DNA of 50,325 nt from Basidiobolus meristosporus CBS 931.73 (Eukaryota; Fungi; Basidiobolomycota). Of the stretch, positions 18,082-48,308 are shown in pieces. The position numbers and the translations under genes were made by a program. Where the stretch lies: assembly GCA_002104905.1 (NCBI GenBank), contig MCFE01000642.1:1-50325 (forward strand), in the 5' to 3' direction. Numbering within the stretch: the stretch's first letter is position 1; each line of letters starts with the position of its first letter. Under the pieces are notes generated by a model. It saw only the letters and a list, made by a program, of their open reading frames with translations. It was not told the origin of the DNA and did no database searches.

Positions 18082-20645
18082 ATGATGGAGGGAAACGCGC
18101 CCACTTCGCTGGTCCTCAGGCCCGGGGTGTGTGGTGTTGGAAAGATAGTGAGGGTCGAGACCAATCACTGCAAGTTTAGCGAGCACTCTCAGGTCGACAT
18201 CTACCAGTACGACCTGTCGATCATGCCGGAGATTCGAAACCCCAAGGTGGCTAGGCTCCTGTTCGACGAGATGCAGAAGAGGTACAAGGATTCCCTGTGC
18301 GGGGAGTACTCCTTGGTGTATGATTTCGCCCGAAACGTGTACTCCAACGGCCCGCTGCCGTTTGGGCAGTCAATGAGCGTGGAGGTAGATCGAGTTTCCA
18401 ATTCCCGTCCTTAACGAATTGTTCTGATTGTTCGAGACAGATGGAGTCGTCCCTGGTCAGCCCGGCCACGCAATGCACCATCAAGATCGTCCAGGTCGCG
18501 GTGATTCCGATCCAGGCGCTCCTGGAGTTTCTGAATGGCCGCTCGGACCAGACGTCCGCAAGCTCGTCTTTCATCACCGCCATGAATGTCCTCTTCAAGT
18601 ACCACACATCTCTGGACCACTTCACTTGGGGAAACTCGATTTTCAGGCCGGGTAAGAGCTTCCCTCTGGGCGGTGGCTTGGAGGCTTGGCGCGGGATCCA
18701 TCAGTCGGTAAAGCCGACGAAGGGCCAGCTGCTGCTGAATATCAATTCGACCGCCACCGCCTTCTACACCCCGGGACCCTTGCTGGACAGCATTGTCAAC
18801 GTGCTCGGGCGTCGAAGCCCGCGCGAGCTCAGGCAAGGGTTCGCCCCCGAGGAGAGATCCCGGTTGGTGCGGTTCTTCAAAGGAGTGACTATCCGGACGA
18901 CCCATCGAGGGGAGAAGAACTTCCAATACAAATTCGAAGGGCTAACCGAGAAAGGAGCGGACCAGACTTTCTTCCCTTCAAGCGATGATCAGATGGACAT
19001 CGGAGTGTCCACCTACTTTCACCAGACCTACAACCTGCGCCTGAATCACCCAGGCCTCCCCTGTGTCCTGGTCAAGAAAGGCAGGGTTTTCCTGCCCATC
19101 GAGGTGTGCGAGGTCGTCCGAGGACTTCGGTACAACTCGGCCAGGCTTAGCGACGAGCACATCAGCAACATGATCAAATTCTCGGCGCTGAGCCCGTCCA
19201 AACGGATCAATGAAATAAACGATGGGATCCGCACCCTGATTCACAACAACGGCCACCACCTGAGCAGATTCGGGGTCAAGGTGGAGAATCGTATGATGGA
19301 CATCGAGTCCAGGATCCTGGATCCACCCACCTTGCAGTTCCACGAGAGCACGCCGGACTTCACCCCGGGCTCGGGTGTGTGGAACATGAACAACCGAAGG
19401 CTCTACCGCACAGTTCCCCTTGTTGCCTGGTCCATCGTCAACTTCGCCTCTCGCGCAGAACGCCAGGTTCAATCTTTTCTCGGTGAGCTGATCAACACCG
19501 GGAGACAGATGGGCATGGCCGTCGAGATGGACTCCCCGGCTGTTCTTCAGCCGTCACGCGAGGATACCATCGAGGAGATCCTGAAGAACGCTTGGTACAG
19601 AGCCCACCATCAATCGGAGGACATCCCTCAGATGATCCTATGCATTCTGCCGGCACGGGATCCCCAGTTGTATTCGGAAATCAAGCAGGTGAGCGAGACC
19701 TCGATTGGGGTGATCACCCAATGCGTGGTCGCGCGGAGCGCACTGAGCCCAGGCCGTGGCTACAAGATGTACCTATCCAACCTGTGGCTAAAGATCAATA
19801 CAAAGCTGGGCGGGATAAACGTTCGACTTAGCCCCAGGTCAAATCTCTCGCTGAAGCTACCCAGCGTCCCCATGATCGTCGGAATCGATCTGTCACACCC
19901 TGGCCCATACGACAAACTCTCCCCCACCACCGCAGCGATGGTGGCCTCCATTGACTCGAGCTTCACGAGATATGTTACTTCCTTCCGGGCCCAGGAGCCT
20001 CGCAAAGAAACCCTGAGCGACGTGGAGTCCATGATGAGTGAACTCCTCGTACTGTACAGACAAGAGTGCGGCAGCTATCCCGAACAGATAATCATATACA
20101 GGGACGGGGTATCCGAAGGCCAATTCGAGGAAGTGAAGCTATGTGAGATAAGGCCGCTGCACGAGCTATTCCAGAAGCGAAAACTCACTCTGAAAGTCAC
20201 CTACATAGTGGCCAGGAAACGGCACCACACACTGTTCTTTCCCACCGAGAGGGCTTTCGCCGACAACTCAGGGAACTGTAGGCCGGGAACTCTGGTCGAC
20301 ACCACCGTGACCCACCCGAACGAGTTCGATTTTTATCTTCAGTCGCACGCGGGCATCCAGGGGACCTCCAGGCCTTGCCACTACTACGTTATCTACGACG
20401 ACTACCACTTTACCGCTGAGGAGCTGCAGACGTTAACCTTCAAGCTATGCTTTATTTACTGTCGCTCGACACGTTCCACCTCCATCCCAGCCCCACAATA
20501 TTACGCTCACTTGGCAGCCAGCAGGGCGCAACTTCACTTTCGGAATGGTCAATGGAACGACCCGCTGAGCGAAAGTGGCCAAGGCTTGCAGGAAACCTAC
20601 AAAGGGGTGAAGCACGAATTGAAGACCCACATGTTCTATGTGTAA
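18082..20645 (+). CDS. AGO: Argonaute (N-L1-PAZ-L2-MID-PIWI), about 835 aa; exons 18082-18384 and 18441-20645
   Basis: GGGLEAWRGIHQSVKP, PAZ LPCV...FLPIEVCEV, MID YSEIK...TQCV and KINTKLGG, PIWI GIDLSH, RKET, YRDGVSEGQ, HAGIQGTSRPCHY, YYAHLAA, terminal MFYV. Confidence 0.97.
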
Positions 20646-28257: not shown

Positions 28258-28374
28258 CCTATCCCACCACGCGAGCCTAATTAACCAAATGTGCCTATTG
28301 AGCAATCTGTCGCCATGCAACCATACTTCCCCTTTCATGAAGAGCTTATTTGATGAGGCTAGATTTCTATAAAA
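28258..28374 (+). promoter_or_regulatory. Conserved upstream block plus TATAAAA of the Met-rich family (copy A)
   Basis: cctatcccaccacgc...taattaaccaaatgtgcctattgagcaatctgtcgccatgc recurs at 29594-29654, 36694-36754, 38739-38799 and 40251-40311. TATAAAA at 28368. Confidence 0.55.
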
Positions 28375-28431: not shown

Positions 28432-29052
28432 ATGCAACTGACCTTCTCTCTGCTCTCCTCATACATCCTGATCCAGTCCGCATTGGCCGCCCCAATGCAT
28501 AACCTTGCTACTGGAGTTAGCGCGGTGGCCAAGACCACCTACCAGACTTCAGCTTGCAGGTATCAGTCCGGCTCATGCTCAATGAGATACAAGTCACACC
28601 GGTCCCCAAAGTACATGGAGTCAGAGCAGATGCCAATGATGATGATGCCAGAGCGTCACCGCTACCAGATGATGGAGCAGCCAGAAGACACTTCCATGGA
28701 GGAAGACCCGACCCCAATGGAGATGCAAAGCTACAAAGACACTCCCATGACAATGGATATGGATATGAATATGGACATGAACATGGCCATGTTTGGGATG
28801 CAGCCAAAGCGGGCACTCATGGATGAGATGCGCGGATACTCAACCCAAGAGAGTGGAGCCCTCTCCAAGTCGAACCAGTTCGATCAGGCCCAACACCTCG
28901 ACCAGACGTTGTACCAACCAGCTCAGCCAGTTCAGTCCCAGGTCATCATTCCTCAGTACTTCCCCCGCAGGTGCAGCAGACCCTACAAGAAGTACAGTGG
29001 GTATGGCTGTCGTCACTACAAGATCAGATACTATGGTAGACACGGATATTAG
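28432..29052 (+). CDS. Secreted Met-rich, Tyr-Arg-Cys-tailed protein, copy A (206 aa)
   Basis: Signal peptide MQLTFSLLSSYILIQSALA|AP, about 25 Met, dibasic PKR and PRR, tail CSRPYKKYSGYGCRHYKIRYYGRHGY. Near-identical to four other copies in the window. Confidence 0.8.
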   Translation: MQLTFSLLSSYILIQSALAAPMHNLATGVSAVAKTTYQTSACRYQSGSCSMRYKSHRSPKYMESEQMPMMMMPERHRYQMMEQPEDTSMEEDPTPMEMQSYKDTPMTMDMDMNMDMNMAMFGMQPKRALMDEMRGYSTQESGALSKSNQFDQAQHLDQTLYQPAQPVQSQVIIPQYFPRRCSRPYKKYSGYGCRHYKIRYYGRHGY

Positions 29053-29766
29053 CCTCAAGGTTGAGTTGACTTTAGCTGATCAGCGTAGATGGAATGTGAT
29101 ATAACGTGATACGACAAGTTAATCAATAAACCAAAATCTTCATACTTTTGAGCGGCTCAAAGATATCAGAGCGTTGAGATCAAGGGTGTTCAGTGTGTGC
29201 ATGTCTTTCTCACTAATTACATAACAATCAGCCCTTCCTGAAGCTTGACGAGGTGAGCTATTACAACTCGGTATTAGGCTCAGTAGGAAAGAAGGATATC
29301 GCTACCCAGATATTGGAAATGGGGACTGTAAGTTGATGGGCTGTTACTTCGCGGAAGCCGAGCGTATACCAAACTTGCTACGATGCTTTATTTAATTGCT
29401 GACTGAAATATACGTCATGTAACCACAGCACCCATCACTGGGATCACAGTTATTGTTCGTATCCACATAAACACATATTTACCAGAGATTTGGTTGGGGC
29501 GGTATGTACTATGCAGCAATATCCTAAATGCTTTTTTCAACCAAAAAAAGTAGTTTGGTAGACCTAAGTTGAATTATTGACCCTATGCAATCACCTATCC
29601 CACCACGCAAGTATAATTAACCAAATGTGCCTATTGAGTAATCTGTCGCCATGCTATCATACTCCCCCTCACATGAAAAGCTTGCTTGATGAGGCTAGAT
29701 TTCTATAAAATGACTGCTTTGACCTTACCATCTCTCATCCAACTTCTGATCTACTCCAGCCTGACC

Positions 29767-30393
29767 ATGCAACTGACCTTCTCTCTGCTCTCCTCATACA
29801 TCCTGATCCAGTCCGCATTGGCCGCCCCAATGCATAACCTTGCTACTGGAGTTAGCGCGGTGGCCAAGACCACCTACCAGACTTCAGCTTGCAGGTATCA
29901 GTCCGGCTCATGCTCAATGAGATACAAGTCACACAGGTCCCCAAAGTACATGGAGTCAGAGCAGATGCCAATGATGATGACGATGACAATGCCAGAGCGT
30001 CACCGCTACCAGATGATGGAGCAGCCAGAAGACACTTCCATGGAGGAAGACCCGACCCCAATGGAGATGCAAAGCTACAAAGACACTCCCATGACAATGG
30101 ATATGGATATGAATATGGACATGAACATGGCCATGTTTGGGATGCAGCCAAAGCGGGCACTCATGGATGAGATGCGCGGATACTCAGCCCAAGAGAGCGG
30201 AGCCCTCTCCAAGTCGAACCAGTTCGATCAGGCCCAACACCTCGACCAGACGTTGTACCAACCAGCTCAGCCAGTTCAGTCCCAGGTCATTATTCCTCAG
30301 TACTTCCCCCGCAGGTGCAGCAGACCATACAAGAAGTACAGTGGGTATGACTGTCGTCACTACAAGATCAGATACTATGGCGGACACTATTAG
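29767..30393 (+). CDS. Secreted Met-rich family, copy B (208 aa)
   Basis: Intact ORF near-identical to copy A, ending ...YYGGHY. Confidence 0.8.
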   Translation: MQLTFSLLSSYILIQSALAAPMHNLATGVSAVAKTTYQTSACRYQSGSCSMRYKSHRSPKYMESEQMPMMMTMTMPERHRYQMMEQPEDTSMEEDPTPMEMQSYKDTPMTMDMDMNMDMNMAMFGMQPKRALMDEMRGYSAQESGALSKSNQFDQAQHLDQTLYQPAQPVQSQVIIPQYFPRRCSRPYKKYSGYDCRHYKIRYYGGHY

Positions 30394-30678
30394 CCTTGGC
30401 TTGAACCGATCTGAATGAATGCGATGTGATGTAGTGTAATTGACAAGTTAACCAATAAACCAGAATATGGATTCTTTGGGAATAGTCGCTACTCCTGAAC
30501 GACTCGAGTGTGTCAATGTATTAGCCAAGCCGAATAACTGTTAGCCACGAGATCGCCAAAAATGGACTGGGTCTGTGCTTTGTAAAGTGCTCTATTAGTT
30601 TATTTCACCTCCTGGTTTCTCATTAGTATACCTGTTTGTTTGCCGAGCTTCTCCTGATGCTGGCTAAGCAATAGTGCA

Positions 30679-32256
30679 TCAATAATCATCCACTTTAATG
30701 TCATTTATACCAAACTCCTCATTCTGCTCATAACTTCTAGCATACTCAGCAATGATCAGGTTAGGATCATCTCCGTCAGGCCTTAACGCCTGAACGAAAG
30801 TATTACCCAGGGGGTCATCCAACACAAGGGTCAACTCATGTCCCGGCTCAACAGCAACCGCCTAGAATCTGTCATCAGAAAGAATAGACAACAACACGAG
30901 CAATTACTCTAGCCAACCTTTTTGAGATTCTCGACAAGGGTCTGGACAACCTCCCTCTTGCTAAGGGGAACGGAATCCCCTTGCAGAAATGGAGTACGAG
31001 ACTGAATATTTTGGATCAGGTCCAGCAAGAGCCCCTCAACAGTGGTGTACTTTCCGGCGGAGAGGATGGACTCGAATCGCAGCTCGGGGATGCTTACTTT
31101 ACAAGAATCCGACTTCACCACCTCCCGGGACATATCCTCCCCATCCTTGAGGTGTAGTGTGATGCGTTTCCCTTTGGCAGCAATCGAGCCGGTTGGTTTG
31201 ACTTCATTGTTTTTGTAGCCACACTGTTCGCAAGCGGTGCTCATAACTACGATTTCCTGAAAGTTTGGTACCTTCAATAGACACATACGCGTCTCACATA
31301 TCACCCCACACGAGTAGCAGGGCTCATGAAACACGCTGACGCTGTCAGTCGTCGAAGAGTCGCTCTCTGCCTCGGCGCGTTGGGATCCAACCCCTTCGGA
31401 AGTATCATGTAGGCCGAGGGAGGCATTTTGCTCTTCGGACCGAGTGTAGTGTTTGATGGTGAGTTTAGGATCGACGCTTGGCGGATCCAAACTTTCAATG
31501 AAACTATTTCCGGCCGGATCATCCATGGAAATGGTCAACGGGTTGTGGCGAGTCAAATGATCCTTCATTTTTGCAATCAGGTCTTCTATTTTCTCATGGA
31601 TCTCTGGTTGCATTATCTGGAGCACGAAATGGTTAGTTTACACATGCTCCAAACTCCGTGAGAACACTTGTCTTCAAACATGCCTTACGAATCGCTTGCT
31701 CCATGGAAAGGTCTTCGATGATGCGTAGCAGCAAACCTTCAATGGTGGTCAAGACACCTCTCTTCGAGGTGTTCGGTAGCTCGAGGTCAAGCTCATGCAA
31801 ACGAATGGTGGCATATTCGGACCTCACGATCTGCCGGGAATAGTCCTAACCAGGATAGAAGGTTGGGTTACCTTCGCTGTAGTAGCAGACACACAAAGTG
31901 GTAAAATACCTCTTTGCTATTAAGAACACAGGTGTAGATCGCCCCCTTCTCTTCAAGCGCACCACCATATTGTACTTGGTTATTCTCGTATTCACAAAAT
32001 GGACATTGGAAGTGTACGAGTATGACTTCTTTGAAGTATGGAACCTTCGTTAACATTATCCGAGTTGTTCCCTAGTGTAACACATTAGACTAGAAACAGG
32101 CTACGAAATGGGTCCTGGACAACACTGAAATGGGACAGCATGTCCGACTTTGCGTTTGATAAAAGTATTTACATTGCGTTCGCACTTCATGCATAGGCTC
32201 TCCACCTCGATCACGGGAGTGTCCTCCTTTATGTCAGTGAAAGAGATATCCTCCAT
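30679..32256 (-). CDS. ZPR1: Zinc finger protein ZPR1, multi-exon
   Basis: PVIEVESLCMKC, TKVPYFKEVILVHFQCPFCEYENN, GVLTTIEGLL, DDPAGNSFIE, second finger CYSCG...CEQCGYKNNEVK, KYTTVEGLL, LDDPLGNTFVQ. Confidence 0.95.
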
Positions 32257-32548
32257 ATGAACAACAACTTCCTAACTTGCTCACCGATGTGTTGCCCTTC
32301 AGCACGACCGAAAATCAGTCAACACTGTAGAACACTCGAAGCTCCAGCATGTTTGAATAATATCTACAAAATTGCCATTTCGGGCCGAATTTATCTTTAT
32401 TCAATGTTGGATCATTCCGATCGAAATTCCTGGCTCCAAAATGATGCTAATCTCTGGAATGCTTACATGATTGGTCTGGCTGTGAGTCTTGGTGGGAGTA
32501 TTAAAGGGAAGTTGCTGCTACTGTCCCCTTTCCAAGCAACTGCTCACC

Positions 32549-32845
32549 ATGACCAACTATATTGAACACGTCCTCTTTCTGACACTTGAGCCCATGAGCG
32601 AGGAGGCCTGGGAAGACCTCCACGCTACCTTTATGGCCATGAAGGGACAAGTCCCTGGAATTGTCGACCTGTCAATTGGTAAAAACATCTCCCCCGAACG
32701 TGCACAAGGCTGTACCCACGCACTCCGAGTCTTGTTGGAAGACCAGAAGGCTTTGACCGTTTACGCAGACCACCCCGCTCACGTTCTCTTCAAGAACAAG
32801 CTTCGTCATCAACGCCCACCCATATGTCTGGACTGGAATATCTAA
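32549..32845 (+). CDS. Stress-responsive A/B barrel (Dabb) protein, 98 aa
   Basis: IEHVLFL, VPGIVDLSIGKN, GCTHAL, ALTVYADHPAH, CLDW. Confidence 0.88.
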   Translation: MTNYIEHVLFLTLEPMSEEAWEDLHATFMAMKGQVPGIVDLSIGKNISPERAQGCTHALRVLLEDQKALTVYADHPAHVLFKNKLRHQRPPICLDWNI

Positions 32846-32907
32846 ACCCGCTTCCACCAAATAAACAAATGCTTATCCAAGAAATTTAATAAACCCTCGA
32901 TCATAAG

Positions 32908-33830
32908 CTATATCTCTCGGGTGAGAACAAACTTCTGAATTGCTAGCAAAACCTGGGAGAAGTTCTCGAACGGGACGTATTCCACCTTTTCCTTGATGCA
33001 CCATTCCTCCAAATCCCTCCCCTTCTTTGCAAACAAGATATCGGCCTCGCGTGCGGCCGAGATGTCCGAGAGCCCGTCTCCCACGAATACGAAAACAGCA
33101 TCGGTCCCTAGGGACTCTTTGACTTTCCGCATGGTCAATGATTTATCATGGCCAAACTCACTATTGATGGGATTTGCATCAGTGATGGAAGATACGTCAT
33201 CAGCAAGGAATTGCGCTACCTGTCGTCGTGATAGACCGGCTTCCACTTGTTGTTCTCTATGCGTACTCCATTGGCCTCGACTTGTATTGTGCTTGATAAA
33301 TCAGTCCCAATAAAGGTGTCCAGAAAATCTTGGATCAATGGCCCGATGCCGCTACGTAGCACTCTCGGTTAGTTGAAAGGGGCCGAGCGAGTTCCTTCCG
33401 CCGACCATGTACTTTACCAGCTAACTACGGTCAAAGGCAGGTTTTCCGAATTACAGTATTCAACAAAGTCCTTGAAACTTGGGTCCACATGGGTAGTAGC
33501 TGGGAGAGGTATGCATGTCAGTTTAGCCACCAAACAACCCAGAAGGAGGTTACCTTTCAACAGCTTCAACGCCTCTTCCCAGGAAACGTTGATCCCATCG
33601 AACTCGCGAAGCAAGCCATCTCTGCAAACACGTAAGTACGGTGCGAAAGAGCCGACGGGGGAAACCTCCGGGGATTACCTAAAGTTGAGTGACCCTTGCT
33701 TGATGGCATCGTCGACCAGCTGTTTGGCCTCGGCACCCATACATTGTGTGATCAGGATATCTAAGGAGTCTTCCTTCGTGATCGTTCCGTCGAAATCGGA
33801 AAATAGAAATAAACGATTCGGAGCGAACAT
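32908..33830 (-). CDS. HAD-like phosphatase (MtnX / YNL010W-like), multi-exon
   Basis: FSDFDGTIT motif I, DPSFKDF...LTVVS, GHDKS, FVGDGLSDISAAREADILFAK. Confidence 0.88.
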
Positions 33831-34022
33831 GGTGGACAGTAAAAAACCGGTTGGATTACGGTTCTTATTTTATTATGTTCATTGCTTCCGGATACGCTGA
33901 AAAAAACCTTTCCGGGCGAGATGATTCGCTTACCGGCCATCGATTTCGATGATTCCCATATGACATCTATCCGACCGATGCATTGGATAAATATATCTAG
34001 CATCCTTGCCACATGGGAGGAG

Positions 34023-35283
<1,261 letters not shown>

Positions 35284-35971
35284 GGTGATGATGAAATAAG
35301 AAACAGAACGTAATCCTTGGGAAATTTATAGTGTATATGCAACCCCAGTCAACCCGGGAATTATATTCATGCTAATACAACTTTATAAAAAGAAAATGGT
35401 GAAAATACACATTATTCGAAGATCTCTAGATTCACTAAGGGAGTAATAGTGGTACCCTAACCCTATATCAATGCAGGATCTATATATATAGACTTAATCT
35501 ATCCTGATGAATTGTGACGCACTGCTTATTTAGATTCTGTGTATTTCAATGGAGGTTTAATCAACAAGTTGACCTAAATGATTGGCATCATTTTTTAATT
35601 TGGAAACATAGATAGTTATGGACTTTCAGATAATCCCTAGAAATTAGTATGTGGTCAATGCAATCAATAGAAGTTTCTTAGGCCTAATTCCGGTGATGTC
35701 TTGGATTGGGCGCCTGTTCGTTTCATGCCTGGTTGGCAATACTATAAGCCGGGCCTCACAAGCATTATCCTCTCCACGATGGTGTTGAAAGGTGGAACAT
35801 AGTGTATATCCAAATGTATGGCATGCCATTTTAATAGTAATAACATTCTTTTCTCCTAGGTCTAATGTTGATCTACATAGGTTCAACTCAGATTTAGTAG
35901 CTATTCCAAAAGAATCACACTATATCACATCCAACCTACACTGGTTAGTTTAAGCCAACTCAGCCCCGAGG

Positions 35972-36580
35972 CTAATATCGGTGCCTGCCATAGTATCTGA
36001 TCTTGTAGTGACGACAGCCATAACCACTGTACTTCTTGTAGGGTCTGCTGCACCTGCGGGGGAAGTACTGAGGAATGATGACCTGGGACTGAACTGGCTG
36101 AGCTGGTTGGTACAACGTCTGGTCGAGGTGTTGGGCCTGATCGAACTGGTTCGACTTGGAGAGGGCTCCGCTCTCTTGGGCTGAGTATCCGCGCATCTCA
36201 TCCATGAGTGCCCGCTTTGGCTGCATCCCAAACATGGCCATGTTCATGTCCATTGTCATGGGGGTGTCTTTGTAGCTTTGCATCTCCATTGGGGTCGGGT
36301 CTTCCTCCATGGAAGTGTCTTCTGGCTGCTCCATCATCTGATAGTGGTGACGCTCTGGCATTGTCATCATCATCATTGGCAGCTGTTCTGACTCCATGTA
36401 CTTCGGGGACCTGTGTGACTTGTATCTCATTGAGCATGAGCCGGACTGATACCTGCAAGCTGAAGTCTGGTAGGTGGTCTTGGCCACCGCGCTAACTCCA
36501 GTAGCAAGGTTATGCATTGGGGCGGCCAATGCGGACTGGATCAGGATGTATGAGGAGAGCAGAGAGAAGGTCAGTTGCAT
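35972..36580 (-). CDS. Secreted Met-rich family, copy C (202 aa)
   Basis: Intact ORF with a shorter MD tract, ending ...YYGRHRY. Confidence 0.8.
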   Translation of the reverse strand: MQLTFSLLSSYILIQSALAAPMHNLATGVSAVAKTTYQTSACRYQSGSCSMRYKSHRSPKYMESEQLPMMMMTMPERHHYQMMEQPEDTSMEEDPTPMEMQSYKDTPMTMDMNMAMFGMQPKRALMDEMRGYSAQESGALSKSNQFDQAQHLDQTLYQPAQPVQSQVIIPQYFPRRCSRPYKKYSGYGCRHYKIRYYGRHRY

Positions 36581-38011
36581 AGTTAGGCTGGAGTAGATCA
36601 GAAGTTGGATGAGAAATGGTAAGGTCGAAAGCGGTCATTTTATGACCACCAGTTCTCATCAAGTTAGCTCTCCGTGGGAAGGGGAATATAGTTGCATGGC
36701 GACAGATTACTCAAAAGGCACATTTGGTGAATTAAACTCACGTGGTGGGACAGGCGAACATAGAGGGTCAATATAACAAGCATAGGAGGAAGATAGCCGT
36801 GTCACAAGAGAATAGTGCATAAGCACAACGCCACAACCAGATTCCTGGTAGCTGTATATCTATGTAGATTCCAATAACGATTGTTGTTCAAGTGACGGGT
36901 GTGCCACATGCTTCAAAGTGACAAACCTATTGATTTTATAGTATATCGTACTACTTTGCAGTAATCACGTGTCTTCTGAGGCCGGAGTTCCTAGAGCCAT
37001 CCCAACCATACAATACTTCCTTGTACTATTCAACTGCACACAAGAGGTTTCTTCTCTTCCTTTGTCAACCCGTCACTGTAGCAAGGTTTACAATCGATTT
37101 CCTCTACGGAACAACCTGTGGACTGATATTTCCCCTTGCCAGCATGTCTACAAATGGAGTTTCCATTAATTTAGATGGGTGAGATGAAGAGGTTAGTCCC
37201 ATTAAGCTTTTGTGGTGCTTATCAACAAATGAACCATACAATGGATGGTATGTGATTCCAGATAGCAATATCTTTCTTCCCTTTCAAGCTTATATTCGGT
37301 TGATTTATATGCGGCTAAAGGGAATATATATATACAATGATCCATACCATCTGAAAGTTTGTAGGAATATGCAGCCAATCCTTACATGTACTTCCTTAGT
37401 GGATCGCAAATGTAGAGTGACATCGAGACTATAATACCATAACTTTGACATTGTCTTTGAGCACTAGATTGATGTCAGATGTTATGTAATTCGATATTTG
37501 TAGTACAGGAAATCTTCACCACTGGTAAAAATACAAGAAAATATGTGTACAAAGATGGGCCATTTTGTAACTCTGAAATTTTGAGGTGTGATAATAATCA
37601 TTTGAAGCAAGTGAAACCGGGACTTGACAAACAAAGCCGATATTATTCTTATGTGAAATCACTAGAATCGTAGTAGCACTGATTGCTATTCGACATATAC
37701 TGATGATTACTTGGAGTAACTGTGACATGAGAATAGTATTTTCGTTGTATGTGTTATTGCTCTACCTGTCGAAGTAAGCGCGGATTGGAATAGAATATCT
37801 GGTATTTAAAATCAGAGCGTAAACCTGTATATTGAGGGTGGTTTACATTGCCTGCTCCAAACCTGACCATTGTTGATTCTGATATCCTTGAGTTACTCAG
37901 CAGCGGCACTTATTGTCAAATGATCTAGACTTAGGTTTATTGACAAACGTCAAATTACACTACATCACATCGCATTCGCTCAGATCGATTCCAGCCGACT
38001 CAACCCCAAGA

Positions 38012-38625
38012 CTAATAGTGTCCGCCATAGTATCTGATCTTGTAGTGACGACAGCCATACCCACTGTATTTCTTGTAGGGTCTGCCGCATCTGTGGGGGA
38101 AGTACTGAGGAATGATGACCTGGGACTGTACCGGTTGGGCTGGTTGGTACAACGTCTGGTCGAGGTGTTGGGCCTGATCGAACTGGTTCGACTTGGAGAG
38201 GGCTCCACTCTCTTGGGCTGAGTATCCGCGCATCTCATCCATGAAGTGCCCGCTTTGGCTGCATCCCAAACATGGCCATGTTCATGTCCATATCATGTCA
38301 TAGGGGTGTCTTTGTAGCTTTGCATCTCCATTGGGGTCGGTCTTCCTCCATGGAAGTGTCTTCTGGCTGCTCCATCATCTGGATAGCGGTGACGCTCTGG
38401 CATTGTCATCGTCATCATCATTGGCATCTGCTCTGACTCCATGTACTTTGGGGACCTGTGTGACTTGTATCTCATTGAGCATGAGCCGGACTGATACCTG
38501 CAAGCTGAAGTCTGGTAGGTGGTCTTGGCCACCGCGCTAACTCCAGTAGCAAGGTTATGCATTGGGGCGGCCAATGCGGACTGGATCAGGATGTATGAGG
38601 AGAGCAGAGAGAAGCTCAGTTGCAT
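38012..38625 (-). pseudogene. Secreted Met-rich family, copy D (frameshifted, or carrying consensus errors)
   Basis: Same sequence as the other copies, but with about five single-base indels between ~38245 and ~38385 (gctatccag, gaccgacc, gacatgatatg, gcacttcatg), producing a premature TGA. Confidence 0.7.
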
Positions 38626-39505
38626 GGTTAGGCTGGAGCTGATCAGAAGTTGGATGAGAAATGGTAAGGTCGAAAGCGGTCATTTTATGACCACCAGTTC
38701 TCATCAAGTTAGCTCTCCATGGGAAGGGGAATATAGTTGCATGGCGACAGATTACTCAATAGGCACATTTGGTGAATTAAACTCGCGTGGCGGGACAGGC
38801 GAACATAGAGGGCCAATATAACAAGCACAGGAGGAAGATAGCCGTGTCACAAGAGAATAGTGCATAAGCTCAACACCGCAACCAGCTCACTAGTAGTTGT
38901 ATTTTTATGTAGATCCCAAAAATAACTGATTCAAGTCACTGGGGCCGAGGTAATATGGCATACATATCAGTTAGAGGCCAAATGAAATATCATGGCAGGT
39001 TTATTGCTGATAAGGCAAATCACACTACTTCATATTAACCACACGCTTGTACTTGGGGGCTGGTATTCCTCCAACCACACAACTCTATCTGTTATCGCTC
39101 AACTGCATCCCAGGAGAATTCATTCTCTCCCAAACCAAACCATGATTAGAGCAACGTGTACGTCCGAATTCCCTGAAGAAGCAGCCCGTCGTCTGACAGG
39201 TCTCATTTACAGCGTATTTATTAATGGCAATGAACGTGATGGTGATATGAGCCATGTCTAGCTTCTGGGCAACGCATTTACTTGGTAGTAAAGGAGTAGC
39301 AACAAACATCCAAATATATAACATATCATTTCAAATAGCAATAGCATTTTTTACTTCTGCGTCTGATATTGAGCTACAAAGGCTCAACTCAGTTGAAGCA
39401 ACTGTTTCAAAAGTATCGAGATTGTGGTTTATTGGTTAACTTGTCAAACGGCACTATAACGCATCCCATCTACGCTGATCAGTTAAAATCAACTCGACCC
39501 TGAGG

Positions 39506-40138
39506 CTAATATCTGTGTCTGCCATAGTATCTGATCTTGTAGTGACGACAGCCATACCCACTGTACTTCTTGTAGGGTCTGCCGCATCTGTGGGGGAAGT
39601 ACTGAGGAATGATGACCTGGGACTGTACCGGTTGGGCTGGTTGGTACAAGGTCTGGTCGAGGTGTTGGGCCTGATCGAACTGGTTCGACTTGGAGAGGGC
39701 TCCACTCTCTTGGGCTGAGTATCCGCGCATCTCATCCATGAGTGCCCGCTTTGGCTGCATCCCAAACATGGCCATGTTCATATCCATATCCATATCCATA
39801 TCCATATCCATTGTCATGGGAGTGTCTTTGTAGCTTTGCATCTCCATTGGGGTCGGGTTTTCCTCCATGGAAGTGTCTTCTGGCTGCTCCATCATCTGGT
39901 AGCGGTGACGCTCTGGCATTGTCATCATCATCATTGGCATCTGCTCTGACTCCATGTACTTTGGGGACCTGTGTGACTTGTATCTCATTGAGCATGAGCC
40001 GGACTGATACCTGCAAGCTGAAGTCTGGTAGGTGGTCTTGGCCACCGCGCTAACTCCAGTAGCAAGGTTATGCATTGGGGCGGCCAATGCGGACTGGATC
40101 AGGATGTATGAGGAGAGCAGAGAGAAGGTCAGTTGCAT
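39506..40138 (-). CDS. Secreted Met-rich family, copy E (210 aa)
   Basis: Intact ORF with the longest (MD)n tract, PHRCGRP variant, ending ...YYGRHRY. Confidence 0.8.
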   Translation of the reverse strand: MQLTFSLLSSYILIQSALAAPMHNLATGVSAVAKTTYQTSACRYQSGSCSMRYKSHRSPKYMESEQMPMMMMTMPERHRYQMMEQPEDTSMEENPTPMEMQSYKDTPMTMDMDMDMDMDMNMAMFGMQPKRALMDEMRGYSAQESGALSKSNQFDQAQHLDQTLYQPAQPVQSQVIIPQYFPHRCGRPYKKYSGYGCRHYKIRYYGRHRY

Positions 40139-40799
40139 GGTTAGGCTGGAGTAGATCAGAAGTTGGATGAGAGATGGTAAGATCAAAGCAGTCATTTTAT
40201 AGAAATCTAGCCTCATCAAGCAAGCTTTTCATGTGAGGGGGAGTATGATAGCATGGCGACAGATTGCTCAATAGGCACATTTGGTTAATTATACTTGCGT
40301 GGTGGGATAGGTGATTGCATAGGGGCAATAATTCAACTTAGATCTACCAAACTACTTTTTTTGGTTGAAAAAAGCATTTAGGATATTGCCGCATAGTATA
40401 TGCCAAAAATACTCACTCCATGCTTTTGGCCCATTGACTTCCGGCTTTACCCACTTATCTGCATAGACAACATTCCAGACTGCCTACAGGTATCCCCATG
40501 AGAAATCTCACAGTTGGAATTCATTGGATTTTTAGCTGGTATTCTGATGGTATTTTGCTGGTATTCAGCTGGAGTTTCTGCATCACATTTCCAGTTGCAA
40601 TTTTTGGCGGAAGCACTGGGAAGCTGATTTTCAAATATGGTATGAATACAAGTAAGCCTAGTCTTCCCCTGGAAAGGATACTTGCTTGCCTGCTGTGAAG
40701 CTAGTACATGATACAGTGAGAGTTGTCACTCATTGGAAAGTTGGATTTCAGCTGATATTATGATGGTATTCTGCTGGCCTTTTCTTAGTTTTTTCTCTT

Positions 40800-41400
40800 A
40801 GGGATATGTCAACCAGTCTCATATATGTGGTTTACTCTGAGTCAAGAGTTTGGTATCAATTTTGTGTCTGTGGCAGTAATAATCAGGTTAGGATGCAGGC
40901 GTTGTACCAAAGGTTGACAAAGGCCACAAAATGTACTAAGTTGTATATTTCATCTGAATATTTTGCCAATACTGGCATGTATCTCATTGCCAGCAAGTCT
41001 GGATATTTTCTCCAAGTATTCACTATTGGGGCTTACCTTGAGTATTTTACCAAGATACTATATACTCAGCACCTATGAAGTAATTAAGCTGTTGCATAGC
41101 CTTCAAAATCTTCATGAATATTCTTGGGCCCCTCAAATATCTACAAGTATCTGGTGTAATCATCAATAGATGTGATCAACTACTTTTCTATACCAAGGGA
41201 TAAGTTTGTATAGACTGACATTGATTTGAGTCACAAGTATTAGAGATCAGAATATACACTAACTGATCTATGCCCAAGTAAAGAAGCTGAGAAAAGGTGT
41301 GCACAATACTATCATAATAATAGCTGAATTCCAAGTGTCCCAAATCTGACAGCTCTCAACATCTCAGATACTAGTTGTTGGGGAGACTAGTAGACAAATC
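40800..41400 (-). mobile_element. Highly degenerate Ty1/copia integrase relic (antisense)
   Basis: Minus-strand fragments resembling GHL, LVYSDL and TSIDDYTRY, with many stops and CpG depletion. Confidence 0.5.
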
Positions 41401-41599
41401 TTTCAAGCAGAGACTAGGCCAGCTAGCATATATGCAAATTTGGTAATCAGCTGCTCCCTATGTTCATCAAGAATTGCAACTGAAAACAGAAAGGACAAAC
41501 ACCAGCTGATTACCAGCAGAGTACTATTAGTATACCAGCAGGATACACACTAAAAGTCAGATGCATTTCAAGTCTGAGATTTTCAAAGGGTACACTCCA

Positions 41600-41925: not shown

Positions 41926-42273
41926 TGTTGTAAGAGTCTTGGAGATATTGGAAGTGATTGGGAGAGCAAGTAGATTATGAGGTTTTTACTGAATGCTTTA
42001 TTCAATGTAAAAGTAGTATTTATATGTTTACATGGTTTTGGCATAAAGAACAGATAGAGTAGGTTAAGGAAAGTCCCAAGAGCATGTGTGCAAAGATTGG
42101 GGCTGTAGGAACAACTTTGAGAACTTTGATGTTCTGGGTGTTTGGCATTTGGTGAAAATATTCTAAGTAAATCCCAACCAGGAATTTGGTCAGTATTCTC
42201 TAGGATTTGAAGGTAATGATCTAAGCTACTAAGTTAGGTGAGTATATAGGTGGAATTACAAATTTTAACAACA
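41926..42273 (-). mobile_element. Solo LTR (348 bp) inserted antisense into the 5' LTR of a same-family element
   Basis: TG...CA ends, reverse-complement match to the host LTR, perfect 5-bp target-site duplication CTTAG at 41921-41925 and 42274-42278. Confidence 0.9.
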
Positions 42274-42557
42274 CTTAGATCACTACCTTCAGATCCTAGA
42301 GAATACTGACCAAATTCCTGGTTGGGATTTACTCAGAATATTTGCTCAGAACATGAAAATCACATAGGTTGTCCAAACAGCCCCAAATTTTGCACACATG
42401 TTCTTGCAACCTTCCTTAACCTATTCTACATGTTTGTAATGCCAAGACCATGTAAAAGTATAAATACTACTTTTACATTCAATAAATCATTAAGTGAAAA
42501 CCACATAATCTACTTGTCCTCCCAATCACTTCCCATATCCCCAAGACTCTTACAACA

Positions 42558-42567: not shown

Positions 42568-45106
42568 TCCAGCTGTCACTCTCTGCAATGTTTACTACTG
42601 CTATTACTGGAATTTTTCCCTCTGCTGAAAAGTTGGATGGATCTAACTACCAAGTGTGGAAGGTGAAGATGAAGATGCTGCTAAAGGAAAGGGGCCTATA
42701 GGATATTGTGATGGGAGAAGAATGCCCTCCTAAAAATGTGGGAGAGAAATCCTTAAAGTGCCAGAAGAAAGAACAAAGTGCCTTTAACTGTATTTGCCAT
42801 AATGTCAAAGACAAATTGCTAATTCAATGCTCAAGAGCAAAAACAGCAAAGAATGCTTGGAAGGCACATACCAGTCATGTTCAGCTGCCAAGAAAATCTA
42901 TCTTAGACAAAAATTCTTTACTACAAAGAAGCTGCCAGGAGTAGAAATTAAAATTCTAATTAACAGAATTATTCTGCTGGTGGATGAGATGGGATCTATG
43001 TGCACACCAACCACTGATGAGGATATTATAGTAATCATCATGAGTAGCCTGACAGACAAGCTTCAGGGCCTTGTATCAGCCCTAGAGTCCAGAACTGTTG
43101 ATTAGACCTTAAATTACATATAAGGAAGGCTACTGGATGAAGATTTAAAAAAACCAAGTGCCAGTAAGAAGGAAGAAGAAAATGCATTTATAAGCAATGA
43201 TAACCAACAAAGGAGATACCCAAGACCTTTTAAAGGCAGTAGCAACCTGTTTTGCAACTGCTGCAAAAGGAAAAGACTCACATCAGATCAGTGCTTGAAA
43301 AAGAGATAGTCTGCTGAAAAAGCCTGATTATGGAAATGCTGCAACAACTGAAGATGGATTTTTCAGATCTGCATTAAATATGACCGCAAACAAGGATTCT
43401 CAGTAGTGGTATGTTGACTCTGGAGCATCTCAACACCTCATGTACCAAAAAGTACTTTTTACCCATTATCAAGAAATTCTATTTGAGAAGGTTTTCATGA
43501 GTGACAGTAGAACAGTTGATTCAGTGGGAGAAGGAACCATCCAAGTAAGCCTTTGAAGCAGTGAAGGAAGCCGTACACTCACCTTTAAACAAGTACTCTA
43601 TGTATCAGAAATAGCCAACAACCTACCATCTGTAAGCAAGGCCACAGTAGAAGGACTCAGTTTCAACTCTGACAATTCTGGATGCAGGATCACTGATCAA
43701 AATGGTGCTCATATTGCTTTGGGTATCAGAGATCAGAATCTGTATAGGTTGACTTATATTCCATCATATCCGGAAGCCAATATAAGTAGCTTAAGTAAAG
43801 AAACACCAATGCTTTGGCACAGGAGATTTGGACACATCAATTTGATTATTTGCGCAAAATGTTGAAAGATCAGCTAATTTCTGGAGTAAAAATTGATCCC
43901 CCAGCTAAATTGAAGCAATGTCAAGCCTGCAAATATGGGAAACAAGCCAGACAACCATTCAAGAGCTCTGGGTTAATCAAAACTAAGAAAAAATTAGATC
44001 TAATTCACTTAGATATGTTTAGACCTATGCAAATTTATCCTTAGGCAGCATGACATATTTAATTACCTTGACTGATGGTTATACAAGAAACACATGGGTC
44101 TACTTCATGAAAAGAAAGGATGAAGCTCTGTCTAAGTTATCTAAAGTTTGCAATCTTTTGTATAACCTTAACAACTGATACATTTTGAGTAGCCCATGTT
44201 TGTGCATTCAGTGATTTCATGCCTAGAGAAGGGTTGTGAACACAATTGTGTCTTAATATCTATGCTAACACTTGGTGTAAGGGATTACTCACTGATGTTA
44301 TCAGACACAAGCCATCATCACTCAGAATTCAGAAATTATGGAATTAAGAAAGTAAATATTAATTGTATGTATTTCCATGGTATAGACAAGTGGCAACATA
44401 TGTAAGTGCAAAACAAATATTGCAAGTTTGCATATTCCCTTTATTAGTAAAATACCTCTACATAGTATATTAAATGTAGGAACAAAGCCCACACATATGT
44501 AAGGATAGCCTTAGATATAAAGCATTATTGGATATCCTAAGAAAGCTACCTTTTAGGCTAAGATAGTGACCAATATCTGCCATATTAGGAGACCTCTGGA
44601 ATAATGTGAATCTATAAGAGCTTCAGAGTTTAGACCAACAGAACAATGAACAAAATACAAATACAGAAGTACTTCAGGAAATCAGCAATCAATCCTTACC
44701 AAGCACCAACAAAACTAATATTTACAGTATGCCCAATGTACTGCCAAGTACTGATTTACAAACAAACCAGTTATGCATCTGCTTTGCAAAGTGTACTCGA
44801 GAGGATTATTAGTCCTGTTTGAATTGAGGATCCTGATGCATTACAAGGAGTTTTAGTGCGGACTTGATTAGCATTATTTGAAAATTTGGTAATGCAAAGT
44901 AGAGCAGATTGCAGATCAATAGAGTCTGCACATGGGATACCCAAGTGGTGATCACATATGTGCAACAAGTCATTGCAGATGATGTAGTCTTTGCTCAGAG
45001 TGCTACAGAGGCGTTACAAGAACACTACATCTATATATACTCGGTCTTGGAAGTAGGAACATCCGTAAATACACAACTTTGTTCTATCTTTCAACTAGCC
45101 TACCAG

Positions 45107-46900
45107 ATGAGACATACTGATATCAACAGTGGTTGCACTGCTTTTAGTAGAATACCAGAGACTAATCGCAAAGATCAGCTTCACATTGACCCATTTGACA
45201 AATATCTATGTGCCCAAAGTGAGCACAAGCTGAGGGAAAAAGGGCTAATATCACCTCTGGGTTTCTCGTCATTGGTTGTGCCAGTACGTGCGCAACTAGG
45301 GGATGACGCCTTGATGTCAGCTGCCGAGTTCGGCATCCGCCAGATTGTCACGTTGGGTGTAGGACTGGATTCACGAGCATTTCGATTAGTGCTTCCTTCG
45401 GATCTGGTCTTCTTCGAGATGGATACCCCAGAACAAATAAAGGTGAGTACCGACCGTATAGTTGGAGATAAGCTGAAGTCGACCTGTTGTAGAATCAGTG
45501 TGGCTGTCGACCTTACCCAAGACTGGGCAACCTCCTTGCGTGATGCTGGCTTCAATACTCAAAAGAGTAGTTTGTGGATTATTGAGGAATTTCTTCCCTA
45601 TTTGGATAAGGCAACTGTAGATAACTTGCTTAGAACTGCACGGGACCTATCTGCGCCTGGAAGCCGACTGTGGTGCGATCATATTCACCCAGACATCTTA
45701 GCCTCAGCTGAATATGCGCCACTTAAAGCAAGCCCTGACAAATCGAGGGTTCGCTCGTGCAGCACGTGGGCAAATCCAACCTGGGAGCTGGAAAGAAATG
45801 GATGGAATGGCCATGCATGGTTGCTCAATGATCTTACTAGCACATGGCCTGAGAATCCGCCACCCTTATGGATGTCACCCATTCCGGACACTTTCGACAC
45901 CTGCTTTCACTGGATAATCTTTGCGACGGTAAGCGAAGCTGAATCCTCAATGCCAAGCAATACACAGAGGATACACGAAATGTGCCGGGGCTTGAAAGAA
46001 ACTCCAAAGAATCTACCCATCAAGTTTATTTATGACTCCTACGGCAGCATGCTCTTCGAAGCAGTAACCCGGGTGCCTAGCTACTATATAAGTCATGCTG
46101 AATGTGAGATTCTTACTCGTTACATTTCAAGCATTGGCCAAGACATCCATCCCCGCTCCCTTGTTGAGCTTGGTTCTGGTAATTCTATAAAAACCCAAAT
46201 AGTATTGGACTTCTACCACAAAGTGAGGTCTCCTTTGCATTACATTGCAATGGATATCAGCTCCGAGGCTCTGAGAAATGGCGTCGATTCGCTAAGCTCC
46301 AAATATGCTGGTCTCGATATAAAGACAATAGTGGGCGACTTTGACGGCGCCGTCAAACTGAACATCATCAATAGACCTGCACTTATCACGTGCTTTGGAA
46401 GCACTATCGGAAATCAATTACCTGAGCAACGTCATAACATGCTGTCCCAAATCTGGGCTCAGATGCACCATGGAGATGCCCTTCTTTTGGGTGTGGATCT
46501 GGTCAAGGATACGCAAGGCATGGTTTCTGCCTATCAGGACCAGAATGGGACCCTAGCTGCCTTTTGTAAGAATGGCTTGACCGTCCTCAACTATGAACTA
46601 GGAGCTGACTTCAAGTTGGAGTCTTTTGAGCACGTTACCACCTGGAACTCACAGCTTCGGCGGGTTGAGAATTGCCTCTTGGCGTGTCATCCTCAAACTA
46701 TTACTCTCTCCAAGCCAAAGACAACGGTGTCTTTTGCGAAAAAAGAGCCGCTGACAGTTGGAATATCGTACAAGTTCTCCCAAGAAAGCCTGCGCTCTGA
46801 GCTCAGAGCCGCTGGGTTCGACCTAACAAGATGGTGGACTGACGCACAGGGTTGCTACGCAATTGCTCTGAGTTTCCCTGTCCAGCCCCCCACATTTTAA
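45107..46900 (+). CDS. Intronless fusion: LCM/Rv0731c-like SAM O-methyltransferase plus EgtD-like (Methyltransf_33) amino-acid N-methyltransferase, about 597 aa
   Basis: N-domain DPFD, GIRQIVTLGVGLDSRAFRL, FFEMDTP, VAVDLTQDW...AGF, LSAPGSRL. C-domain PKNLPIKFIYD..GSMLFE, YY...E.EIL, LVELGSGNSIKT, MDIS, GSTIGN, LLLGVDLVKD, LGADF, SYKF, WWTD. ATG chosen downstream of a TATATA at ~45030. Confidence 0.85.
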   Translation: MRHTDINSGCTAFSRIPETNRKDQLHIDPFDKYLCAQSEHKLREKGLISPLGFSSLVVPVRAQLGDDALMSAAEFGIRQIVTLGVGLDSRAFRLVLPSDLVFFEMDTPEQIKVSTDRIVGDKLKSTCCRISVAVDLTQDWATSLRDAGFNTQKSSLWIIEEFLPYLDKATVDNLLRTARDLSAPGSRLWCDHIHPDILASAEYAPLKASPDKSRVRSCSTWANPTWELERNGWNGHAWLLNDLTSTWPENPPPLWMSPIPDTFDTCFHWIIFATVSEAESSMPSNTQRIHEMCRGLKETPKNLPIKFIYDSYGSMLFEAVTRVPSYYISHAECEILTRYISSIGQDIHPRSLVELGSGNSIKTQIVLDFYHKVRSPLHYIAMDISSEALRNGVDSLSSKYAGLDIKTIVGDFDGAVKLNIINRPALITCFGSTIGNQLPEQRHNMLSQIWAQMHHGDALLLGVDLVKDTQGMVSAYQDQNGTLAAFCKNGLTVLNYELGADFKLESFEHVTTWNSQLRRVENCLLACHPQTITLSKPKTTVSFAKKEPLTVGISYKFSQESLRSELRAAGFDLTRWWTDAQGCYAIALSFPVQPPTF

Positions 46901-47215: not shown

Positions 47216-48308
47216 TTACACTCGTTGAACAGCTACATATGCGCTCATCAAATATTCATCCTCCGAGCTGGCATAGTACAAGCGTAACTTGCGGAAGTAT
47301 TCATCTACAAAGTGAACCATTATGGCTTCATTTGCAAAGACCTGGCGTTTCTTCAAACCGGCTAGTATTTGTGGGTAACATGCCGCTTCCATTATATCCA
47401 TTCCAGCCTCTCCCTTGTTGAAAGGCTCCGTAAATATGCGCTCAGCGTAGCTCACCAAACGTAGAGTAGGAACAAGGCTCAAGGCCCGATAGATGTCTTC
47501 CTTTGATCTACAGAAAACTGCGACGCTTGTGGTATCAAGGAGCTTAGGATTAATGTTGGCCTCATTGATGTGGTGTTGCCAAATATCATCCATACGCTTC
47601 AGACAATCATAGCGCTGTATCACGGAAGTTACAAGGTGACCTCCAATTGACAGCTCAGCTGAACGACTGGCAAAATATGAGACTAACTCTCGATGGCCTT
47701 CGTCGCGAATCAGGTTGGCTTGAGAAGCATTAATCTCAGCTGACGCAAAGGTTAATGGACGATCCATAGTCACCGGAATAGTATGTAGCCAATGAACACT
47801 ATTAAAGCAGACACCTAGGTCAATGCTTCCACTTGGCACACACTGCGTGAAGAAAGACTTAGCACTGAGCATGGTTAATACATCCACCGCCGGGCTACCA
47901 GTGATAAAAGTATGATTTAGGTAGGACAAATCGGGATTGTCCAAGCACTTCAGCAGCTCTCCAAAGTCGTTATTTGGAAGATCGTTATGGTAGACATGGA
48001 TTGTTAAGTGTTTGTTGCCCTCCAATTCCTGAAGGGAACTCAGGATGCCATTCACCACAGCCATGGAATTGGCCCCATGGCTACATCCATAGTCCCCAAT
48101 AGTGAATGTTGTTTTTGTATTGCGAGGCACTGCAGACAGTTCTTTCATCAATGCTTGAGCTATCAACAGTCAAAGAAAGTCTGTACTTACCTAGCTTCTT
48201 CAACACTGAGATTCCATGCTCATTCATCTGAGCCTGTAGCGAGGAGCTTTTGTTATAGCTCATCATTGGTTGGATCATGGAGTCACACGTTGTGAAATCT
48301 GGTATCAT
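47216..48308 (-). CDS. SABATH-family (Methyltransf_7) carboxyl/N-methyltransferase; putative 31-nt intron at 48160-48190
   Basis: SYNKSSSLQ, IGDYGCSHGANS, YHNDLPNNDF, KSFFTQCVPSGSIDL, NSVHWL, FASRSAELSIGGHLV. The start could be 48308 or 48266. Confidence 0.85.

Follow-up and report, generated by a model that had tools for sequence, protein, structure and literature searches.

The 50,325-nt stretch analyzed here, called the window throughout, makes up a contig of Basidiobolus meristosporus CBS 931.73 in its entirety, and five related units, copies A to E, lie on it (Table 1). We read these as real, selected genes of a protein family found only in Basidiobolus, encoding exported and intrinsically disordered proteins of modular build and brought together by recent local expansion, and we put the probability of this reading at roughly 60%. 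That the units include genuine protein-coding genes, with an exported product lacking any recognized domain, is very likely on the evidence of their sequences. An initial annotation, made from the letters of the window, had described five near-identical, intronless genes of 202-210 amino acids; open reading frames (ORFs) and an alignment recover five homologous units where it had placed them, and A, B, C and E answer to the description, while copy D turns out to be a pseudogene.

The units, each about 0.9-1.1 kb long, are arranged as two inverted, convergent blocks, A and B on the plus strand and C, D and E on the minus strand, with 5.6 kb of unique housekeeping genes between them (ZPR1, a Dabb-like ORF, a phosphatase-like ORF and a CaM-type kinase). 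Between pairs of units the coding sequence diverges by 1.3-3.3%, the 5' flank by as much as 20% and the 3' flank by 22-45%, and each unit has its own indels, all of them in frame in A, B, C and E; with flanks and indels differing in this way, we rejected an assembly artifact, a concern raised in the initial annotation, as the source of the five copies. Copy D has four frame breaks: an extra T at 38383, a lost C at 38341, an extra T at 38245 and, at 38292-38295, a 4-nt remnant TGAT that replaces the repeat and brings in an in-frame TGA. Because the other four copies carry in-frame indels only, random sequencing error is an unlikely cause of these lesions. A sixth copy, F, lies at L001:10001-10496, downstream of an element of the Ty1/copia type (gag and pol ORFs spanning L001:942-5046, another piece of pol at 5293-6426), and stays in frame until it runs off the cut end of contig MCFE01001160.1; since this copy ends a contig, the true copy number may be higher than the one counted.

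Table 1. Positions of the gene copies, their upstream signals and the segments of their product
Feature	Position	Strand	Details
Copy A	28432-29052	+	intact intronless coding sequence, 206 amino acids; translation identical to P0002
Copy B	29767-30393	+	intact coding sequence, 208 amino acids; MMMTMTM; GGHY end
Copy C	35972-36580	-	intact coding sequence, 202 amino acids; (MD/MN) run shortest of the copies
Copy D	38012-38625	-	pseudogene; ORF stops after 110 amino acids (alignment and lesion mapping)
Copy E	39506-40138	-	intact coding sequence, 210 amino acids; (ATGGAT) run longest and perfect; HR before tail, not RR
TATAAAA, copy A	28368-28374	+	58-64 nt 5' of ATG
TATAAAA, copy B	29704-29710	+	58-64 nt 5' of ATG
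TATAAAA, copy E	40195-40201	-	58-64 nt 5' of ATG
CATAAAA variant, copy C	36638-36644	-	58-64 nt 5' of ATG
CATAAAA variant, copy D	38683-38689	-	58-64 nt 5' of ATG
34-nt upstream block CCAAATGTGCCTWTTGAGYAATCTGTCGCCATGC	28285-28318	+	copy A, equivalents at B-E; alignment and pattern search
Copy A, residues 1-19			hydrophobic N-terminus, ending ALA before AP
Copy A, residues 20-59			basic stretch, net +5, C-x6-C loop
Copy A, residues 60-131			acidic core, net -9, 21 Met in 72 residues (29%)
Copy A, residues 132-176			Gln/Asn/Pro-rich stretch
Copy A, residues 177-206	28960-29049	+	tail (net +9) with 7 Tyr and the C-x12-C Cys pair
Family-defining core, copy A	28777-28953	+	residues ~116-174, …QPKRALMDEMRGYSTQESGALSKSNQFDQAQHLDQTLYQP…IIPQ
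Microsatellite (ATGGAY/ATGAAY)n, copy A	28753-28791	+	hexanucleotide, encodes MDMDMNMDMNM (Tandem Repeats Finder)
Equivalent array, copy B	30097-30135		Tandem Repeats Finder and alignment indels
Equivalent array, copy C	36233-36261		Tandem Repeats Finder and alignment indels
Equivalent array, copy E	39779-39811		Tandem Repeats Finder and alignment indels

A conserved core shared within Basidiobolus

An exhaustive HMMER search against 1.84 billion representatives returned 20 proteins, with E-values of 1e-33 to 1e-10 to family members, and a profile word search added 5; a word-indexed search matched only the own gene models of the B. meristosporus genome. Of 26 relatives, 24 were looked up, and all of these belong to B. 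ranarum or B. meristosporus, P0002 being copy A of the window and P0003 copy F on MCFE01001160.1. In a metagenome scan with the family alignment, 569 stretches matched the pattern and none was confirmed. As far as present databases show, this family of about 25 proteins is restricted to the genus. The initial annotation had recognized neither relatives nor a domain; the former do exist, and on the latter it agrees with our searches for a characterized family. Pfam scans of four copies and all 21 aligned relatives gave only sub-threshold hits (wnt, DUF4781, GvpK and Myticin-prepro, the best being wnt at E = 0.056, which fails the cut-off), the PDB had no match at E <= 10 to either a single segment or two profiles, and the ESM Atlas had no usable match to the whole protein or its C-terminal part. 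Literature searches on Basidiobolus Met-rich proteins, secretome, transcriptome and capilliconidial adhesives brought up nothing on the family. The family itself is undescribed, and we define it here from two alignments (A3 and A4) under the name SNQFDQ-core.

Both alignments contain a conserved N-terminal segment with a Y-x4-C-x6-C loop. The part that gives the family its name is a Gln/Asn-rich core of about 48 residues, P-x-x-ALLD-x-V-x-G-x-S-x-Q-x3-ALS-x-SNQFDQAQ-x-IDQTLYQP, that is, ALLD…ALSNSNQFDQAQ-IDQTLYQP, in which L, AL, DQ, Q and Y are invariant and S-SNQF, T and Q nearly so. A QP-rich IIIP/IIIT stretch is conserved as well, and one subfamily only has a basic aromatic tail, KKYK…H-x-x-FKIRYFSGNRY. 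The window copies bear the marks of the family and of this subfamily: in A, B, C and E the core reads QPKRALMDEM…ALSKSNQFDQAQHLDQTLYQP and matches all invariant columns (in D the core segment is out of frame), the N-terminal loop TTYQTSACRYQSGSC aligns with TTYKDRSCGEQAGSC of P0004, and the tail follows the KKY…[FY]KIRY[FY] pattern of subfamily 1, PYKKYSGYGCRHYKIRYYGRHGY aligning with AYKKYKKFAHRSFKIRYFSGNRH. Core and tail are conserved across the two species and among old paralogs, at 35-50% overall identity.

The spacer between loop and core, by comparison, is hypervariable; it is Glu/Asp/Gln-rich with 0-3% Met in most members, and most spacers ahead of the core carry a surplus of acidic residues (net -5 to -30). 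In P0004, the closest B. ranarum relative at 41% identity, Met makes up 2.6% of the protein and the tail has no Cys. Met-rich spacers occur only in the window copies and in one B. ranarum branch, where they are built from different repeats (P0007 with 10.2% Met and His-rich HHTWEKPKK repeats, P0011 with 9.2% and P0009 with 5.6%), and the tail Cys pair of the window copies is absent from most relatives. On this comparison, the two features stressed in the initial annotation, the Met-rich core and the second Cys pair, are lineage-specific, the conserved parts lying elsewhere in the protein. The C-terminal part also varies among subfamilies, ending in P0018 with CSRCGCRRRHRGRRYRFGRRC and in one family member with an Arg/Cys-rich peptide; where the basic tail is complete, in 13 members, its charge is +8 to +11 in 12 and 0 in P0009. 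Relatives elsewhere are intronless and sit in small tandem clusters with gene fragments. Small clusters of divergent members were seen at L003:8091-12759 and L004:56-2348 in B. meristosporus and at L002:3618-7231 in B. ranarum, and longer members have a second conserved module, PLLRQVFTTVTRKH-NLN-ANAN…NIKYQAGPSFEAEG, which matches nothing in Pfam and which the window copies do not have.

The relatives also bear on the gene models. As they begin at the MQ… position, the start codon chosen in the initial annotation is right; an upstream ATG in TATAAAATG was rejected as the start, since it shares the reading frame in B, E and F alone and lies in another frame in A, C and D. Public annotation of the loci needs correcting: the model K493DRAFT_361093 (318 amino acids; 35953-39919, minus strand) is a chimera of three loci, to which copy E contributes residues 1-122, pseudogene D residues 118-160 and copy C residues 161-302; the model of copy F (K493DRAFT_364740) is spliced wrongly; and neither A nor B has a public gene model at all.

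Selection, gene conversion and a coding microsatellite

Among the intact copies, the pairwise ratio of nonsynonymous to synonymous substitution rates (dN/dS) is 0.08-0.15, and only about 11 of 29 changes are nonsynonymous, against 76% expected if the genes were neutral (binomial p = 1.4e-5). The signals around the genes are kept as well. A pattern search for TATAAAA or CATAAAA gave five matches where none was expected, the strong TATA of the initial annotation reading TATAAAA in A, B and E and CATAAAA in C and D; in the alignment, copies A, B, D and E have AATAAA about 70 nt past the stop. High expression, which the initial annotation read from the TATA box and the local amplification, may follow from these boxes and the copy number. 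Farther upstream, the 34-nt block is near-invariant across all copies, though the surrounding 5' flank diverges by as much as a fifth, and makes a candidate for a shared cis-regulatory element.

Set against these signals is the possibility that the units are young, near-neutral, low-complexity genes without a specific function, similar through gene conversion only and perhaps partly non-expressed. Such an account is attractive for a family that is confined to one genus and has no predicted fold, and of whose five window copies one is already dead, and it would accommodate a composition driven by a microsatellite. It sits poorly with a dN/dS significantly below 1, with four intact copies whose indels are all in frame, with the retention of core and tail between species and old paralogs, and with the joint conservation of upstream block, TATA box and AATAAA signal. 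Given the signal of selection, we consider it very unlikely, the least probable of the alternatives weighed here.

In the 5' flank, 16 informative sites unite B with E and 24 unite C with D; the coding sequence has no informative site in its first 175 nt, and 7 sites in its 3' part group D with E; in the 3' flank there is support for B with D and for C with D. These patterns are mosaic and bear the signature of repeated gene conversion centered on the coding region, atop purifying selection; pseudogene D still joins in the exchanges. The history we propose for the cluster is one of recent local expansion, in which units of about 1 kb would have been copied in tandem and in inversion, their coding parts kept alike by gene conversion while copy D decayed.

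The unusual composition of the product has a partly mechanical explanation. Met makes up 10.9-12.9% of the whole protein across intact copies, in line with the 12% first estimated, and is densest in the acidic core, part of which is encoded by a hexanucleotide microsatellite whose repeat number is different in each paralog. In the window sublineage, the acidic spacer may have been overtaken by Met codons, partly via slippage of the (ATGGAY)n array. The cluster offers a clean, small case of concerted evolution and a coding microsatellite yielding an extreme amino-acid composition.

Predicted export and disorder, and possible roles

Five modules can be told apart in the proteins: a probable signal peptide, the small loop with its C-x6-C, an acidic spacer that evolves fast, the core of about 48 residues, and a Gln/Pro-IIIP stretch with a conserved basic aromatic tail. 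Most of the parts had been named in the initial annotation and were found again, including the signal-peptide-like N-terminus, the basic Cys-Tyr patch (CRYQSGSCSMRYKSHRSPKY), the Gln/Pro linker and the basic, Tyr-rich tail with the second Cys pair. We infer that the N-terminus is a signal peptide and the product exported, because the N-terminal sequence has the appropriate pattern and the N-terminus is conserved family-wide; past it, the hydropathy profile has no hydrophobic segment. With AlphaFold2, a check suggested at the outset, neither the whole protein (mean predicted local distance difference test score, pLDDT, 49.8; predicted template modeling score, pTM, 0.11) nor the core plus tail (mean pLDDT 61.8, pTM 0.13) acquired a fold or any secondary structure when modeled with the family alignment, a result that fits, if weakly, an intrinsically disordered product.

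As for the mode of action, we tentatively suggest, at somewhat less than even odds, that the product is a charge-block pro-protein binding an anionic partner through its core and cationic tail. The working end would be the conserved core together with the Tyr/Lys/Arg tail, gripping a partner such as the fungus's own wall or matrix or another microbe's envelope, and the acidic, Met-rich block would act as a counter-ion or spacer free to vary; A, B and C could also free the tail at the RR site directly before it (HR in D and E).

Several observations weigh against this proposal and the broader reading behind it. The dibasic site, RR in A-C and KR/RR in P0004, P0005 and P0021, is absent in E and many others, and because only some members have it, release of the tail is not a family rule. 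The net charge of the mature protein runs from -25 to +17 across members and is therefore unbalanced, and a second subfamily ends not in the basic tail but in an acidic stretch and CxRC. Conservation is strongest in the neutral core, for which a pro-protein offers no explanation. The alignments behind the fold predictions are shallow (21-23 sequences), which leaves disorder a prediction, and the signal-peptide call draws on a sequence pattern and the conservation of the N-terminus. In short, the analysis shows how the genes are built, which family they belong to, that they are under selection and exchange sequence by conversion, and that no fold is predicted; that the protein is secreted and processed, which partner it binds and what its Met residues might do are our inferences.

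The Met-rich core is the natural starting point for a different proposal, a soluble extracellular binder or buffer of Cu(I)/Ag(I) that serves in scavenging or detoxification of soft metals in the gut, or else a sink in which Met takes up oxidants. The dense MxM and MxxM spacing of the 21 Met in the 72-residue core of copy A invites it, methionine-only MxMxxM motifs of human Ctr1 peptides being reported as Cu(I)/Ag(I)-selective (PMC9117721). Separate enrichment for Met in the B. ranarum branch (P0007 and P0011) adds to the case, and the copy number is consistent with a demand for dosage. At the family level, however, the Met core is unconserved, with 2.6% Met in P0004 and 0-3% in most members, and in the window it is partly a slippage-prone microsatellite of varying length between paralogs. 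No sequence match to any metal-binding family was obtained, no copper-related gene occurs among the neighbors, and a search for the yeast-type copper-response element of Mac1 (CuRE) found no site near or upstream of the genes and no enrichment. A metal-binding role is in our judgment improbable. The initial annotation had put forward Cu/Ag binding, a sulfur store and a Tyr-crosslinked spore-coat or adhesive protein; because neither the Met core nor the second Cys pair is conserved in the family, all of these lose force as family-level functions, and a lineage-specific role is what they may still describe.

The tail leads elsewhere, to a structural protein of the wall or spore surface or an adhesive, perhaps in the wall or at the adhesive tip of capilliconidia, whose Gln/Pro stretch and Lys/Tyr tail would be cross-linked by transglutaminase-type or oxidative Tyr coupling or would stick by cation-pi and charge interactions. 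A product predicted to be disordered, with a Tyr/Lys/Arg/Gly-rich tail holding 7 Tyr in 30 residues after a Gln/Pro-rich segment, is compatible with this; multiple gene copies suit a bulk product, and the strong retention of the KKYK…FKIRYFSGNRY tail in two species fits a fixed binding partner. The Tyr-rich part is nevertheless only some 30 residues long, and the protein lacks both the repeat structure typical of bulk structural proteins and any wall-anchor signal, of the glycosylphosphatidylinositol (GPI) type or otherwise. Among the neighbors there is no gene for a tyrosinase, laccase, transglutaminase or other wall enzyme, and searches of the literature turned up no molecular data for the adhesives of Basidiobolus. 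We regard a structural or adhesive role, too, as unlikely, and retain the exported, modular protein with core and cationic tail as the preferred reading.

The neighborhood gives no functional hint, consisting of housekeeping genes (Lon protease, Argonaute, ZPR1, the CaM-type kinase, TauD and an M16 peptidase). The Lon protease gene lies at 5194-8028 and the Argonaute gene, with PAZ and Piwi domains, at 18441-20645, both ordinary housekeeping context on the same contig. On the other side, a long ORF (44909-46900) and an ORF for a S-adenosylmethionine (SAM)-dependent carboxyl methyltransferase (47216-48166) adjoin a low-GC stretch at 40-44 kb with diverged inverted repeats (40503-41582 and 41983-42500).

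Comparison with known systems

The true homologues closest at hand, K7432_012791 (P0004) and K7432_012792 (P0005) of B. ranarum and K493DRAFT_349226 (P0006) and K493DRAFT_301816 (P0013) of B. meristosporus, are annotated only as hypothetical proteins. Like the window copies, they have a signal peptide and a C-x6-C loop, an ALLD…SNQFDQAQ-IDQTLYQP core with the IIIP stretch and, as basic tail, KKYK…FKIRYFSGNRY; they differ in their Glu/Asp/Gln-rich spacers, with 1-3% Met, and in tails without the Cys pair, and some of them add the module PLLRQVFTTVTRKH…NIKYQAGPS, which the window copies lack. What is new, then, is an undescribed, genus-restricted family with a new conserved core motif, in which the five loci can now be placed. 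Basidiobolus inhabits the guts of amphibians and reptiles and can infect people, and amplified secreted proteins would be natural candidates for contact with gut microbes, the host surface or metals; the family provides a lead for research on the extracellular biology of the genus.

Known groups of proteins were considered as well and rejected. Ctr copper transporters (PF04145) have three transmembrane helices (TM), with MxxxM in TM2 and GxxxG in TM3, and the window protein has neither a Pfam match nor a hydrophobic segment after its signal peptide. Kex2-processed repeat proteins (KEPs) and precursors of dikaritin-type ribosomally synthesized and post-translationally modified peptides (RiPPs) contain multiple repeated core peptides, each flanked by KR or RR; the window protein has no internal peptide repeat except (MD/MN)n, and its dibasic sites are single (KR127 and the RR before the tail) and unconserved in copy E and most relatives.

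Three further systems resemble the family by analogy only. Mets motifs, which occur in the ectodomains of Ctr1 and in Met-rich copper proteins of the bacterial periplasm (PMC9117721, PMC6437178), likewise have dense MxM/MxxM in a disordered, extracytoplasmic acidic segment; the window protein differs in lacking a transmembrane domain and any homology to them, its wealth of Met is confined to its lineage and owed in part to a microsatellite, and of what would mark a binder of soft metals through clustered Met thioethers, the density of the motifs is visible. Mussel foot proteins and similar Tyr/Lys/Arg/Gly-rich adhesives are also cationic, Tyr-rich, disordered and secreted, whereas in the window protein only the tail of about 30 residues is so composed, and no associated tyrosinase was found nearby. 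Precursors of cationic peptides with an anionic propiece, of the defensin or cathelicidin type, are laid out in the same way, with a signal peptide before a pro-region that is acidic or conserved and a cationic peptide at the C-terminus, occur in multicopy gene clusters and have a C-terminal part that varies between subfamilies; they have no similarity to the window proteins in sequence or fold, the family here has no conserved cleavage site, and the tail of its main subfamily is conserved rather than hypervariable.

Reasoning from these likenesses, one might picture a secreted, soluble Cu(I) carrier or buffer with Mets motifs, in its logic analogous to the secreted zinc scavengers of fungi, or a cathelicidin-like pro-protein whose core chaperones a cationic, Tyr-rich peptide directed against gut bacteria. 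Both are long shots. Either one, if true, would give an early-diverging fungus of the gut an extracellular system not known before, whose basis is a domain without relatives outside the genus. As a kind of gene, the members of the family are in familiar company, taxonomically restricted, tandemly amplified genes for secreted, disordered proteins being well known from fungi.

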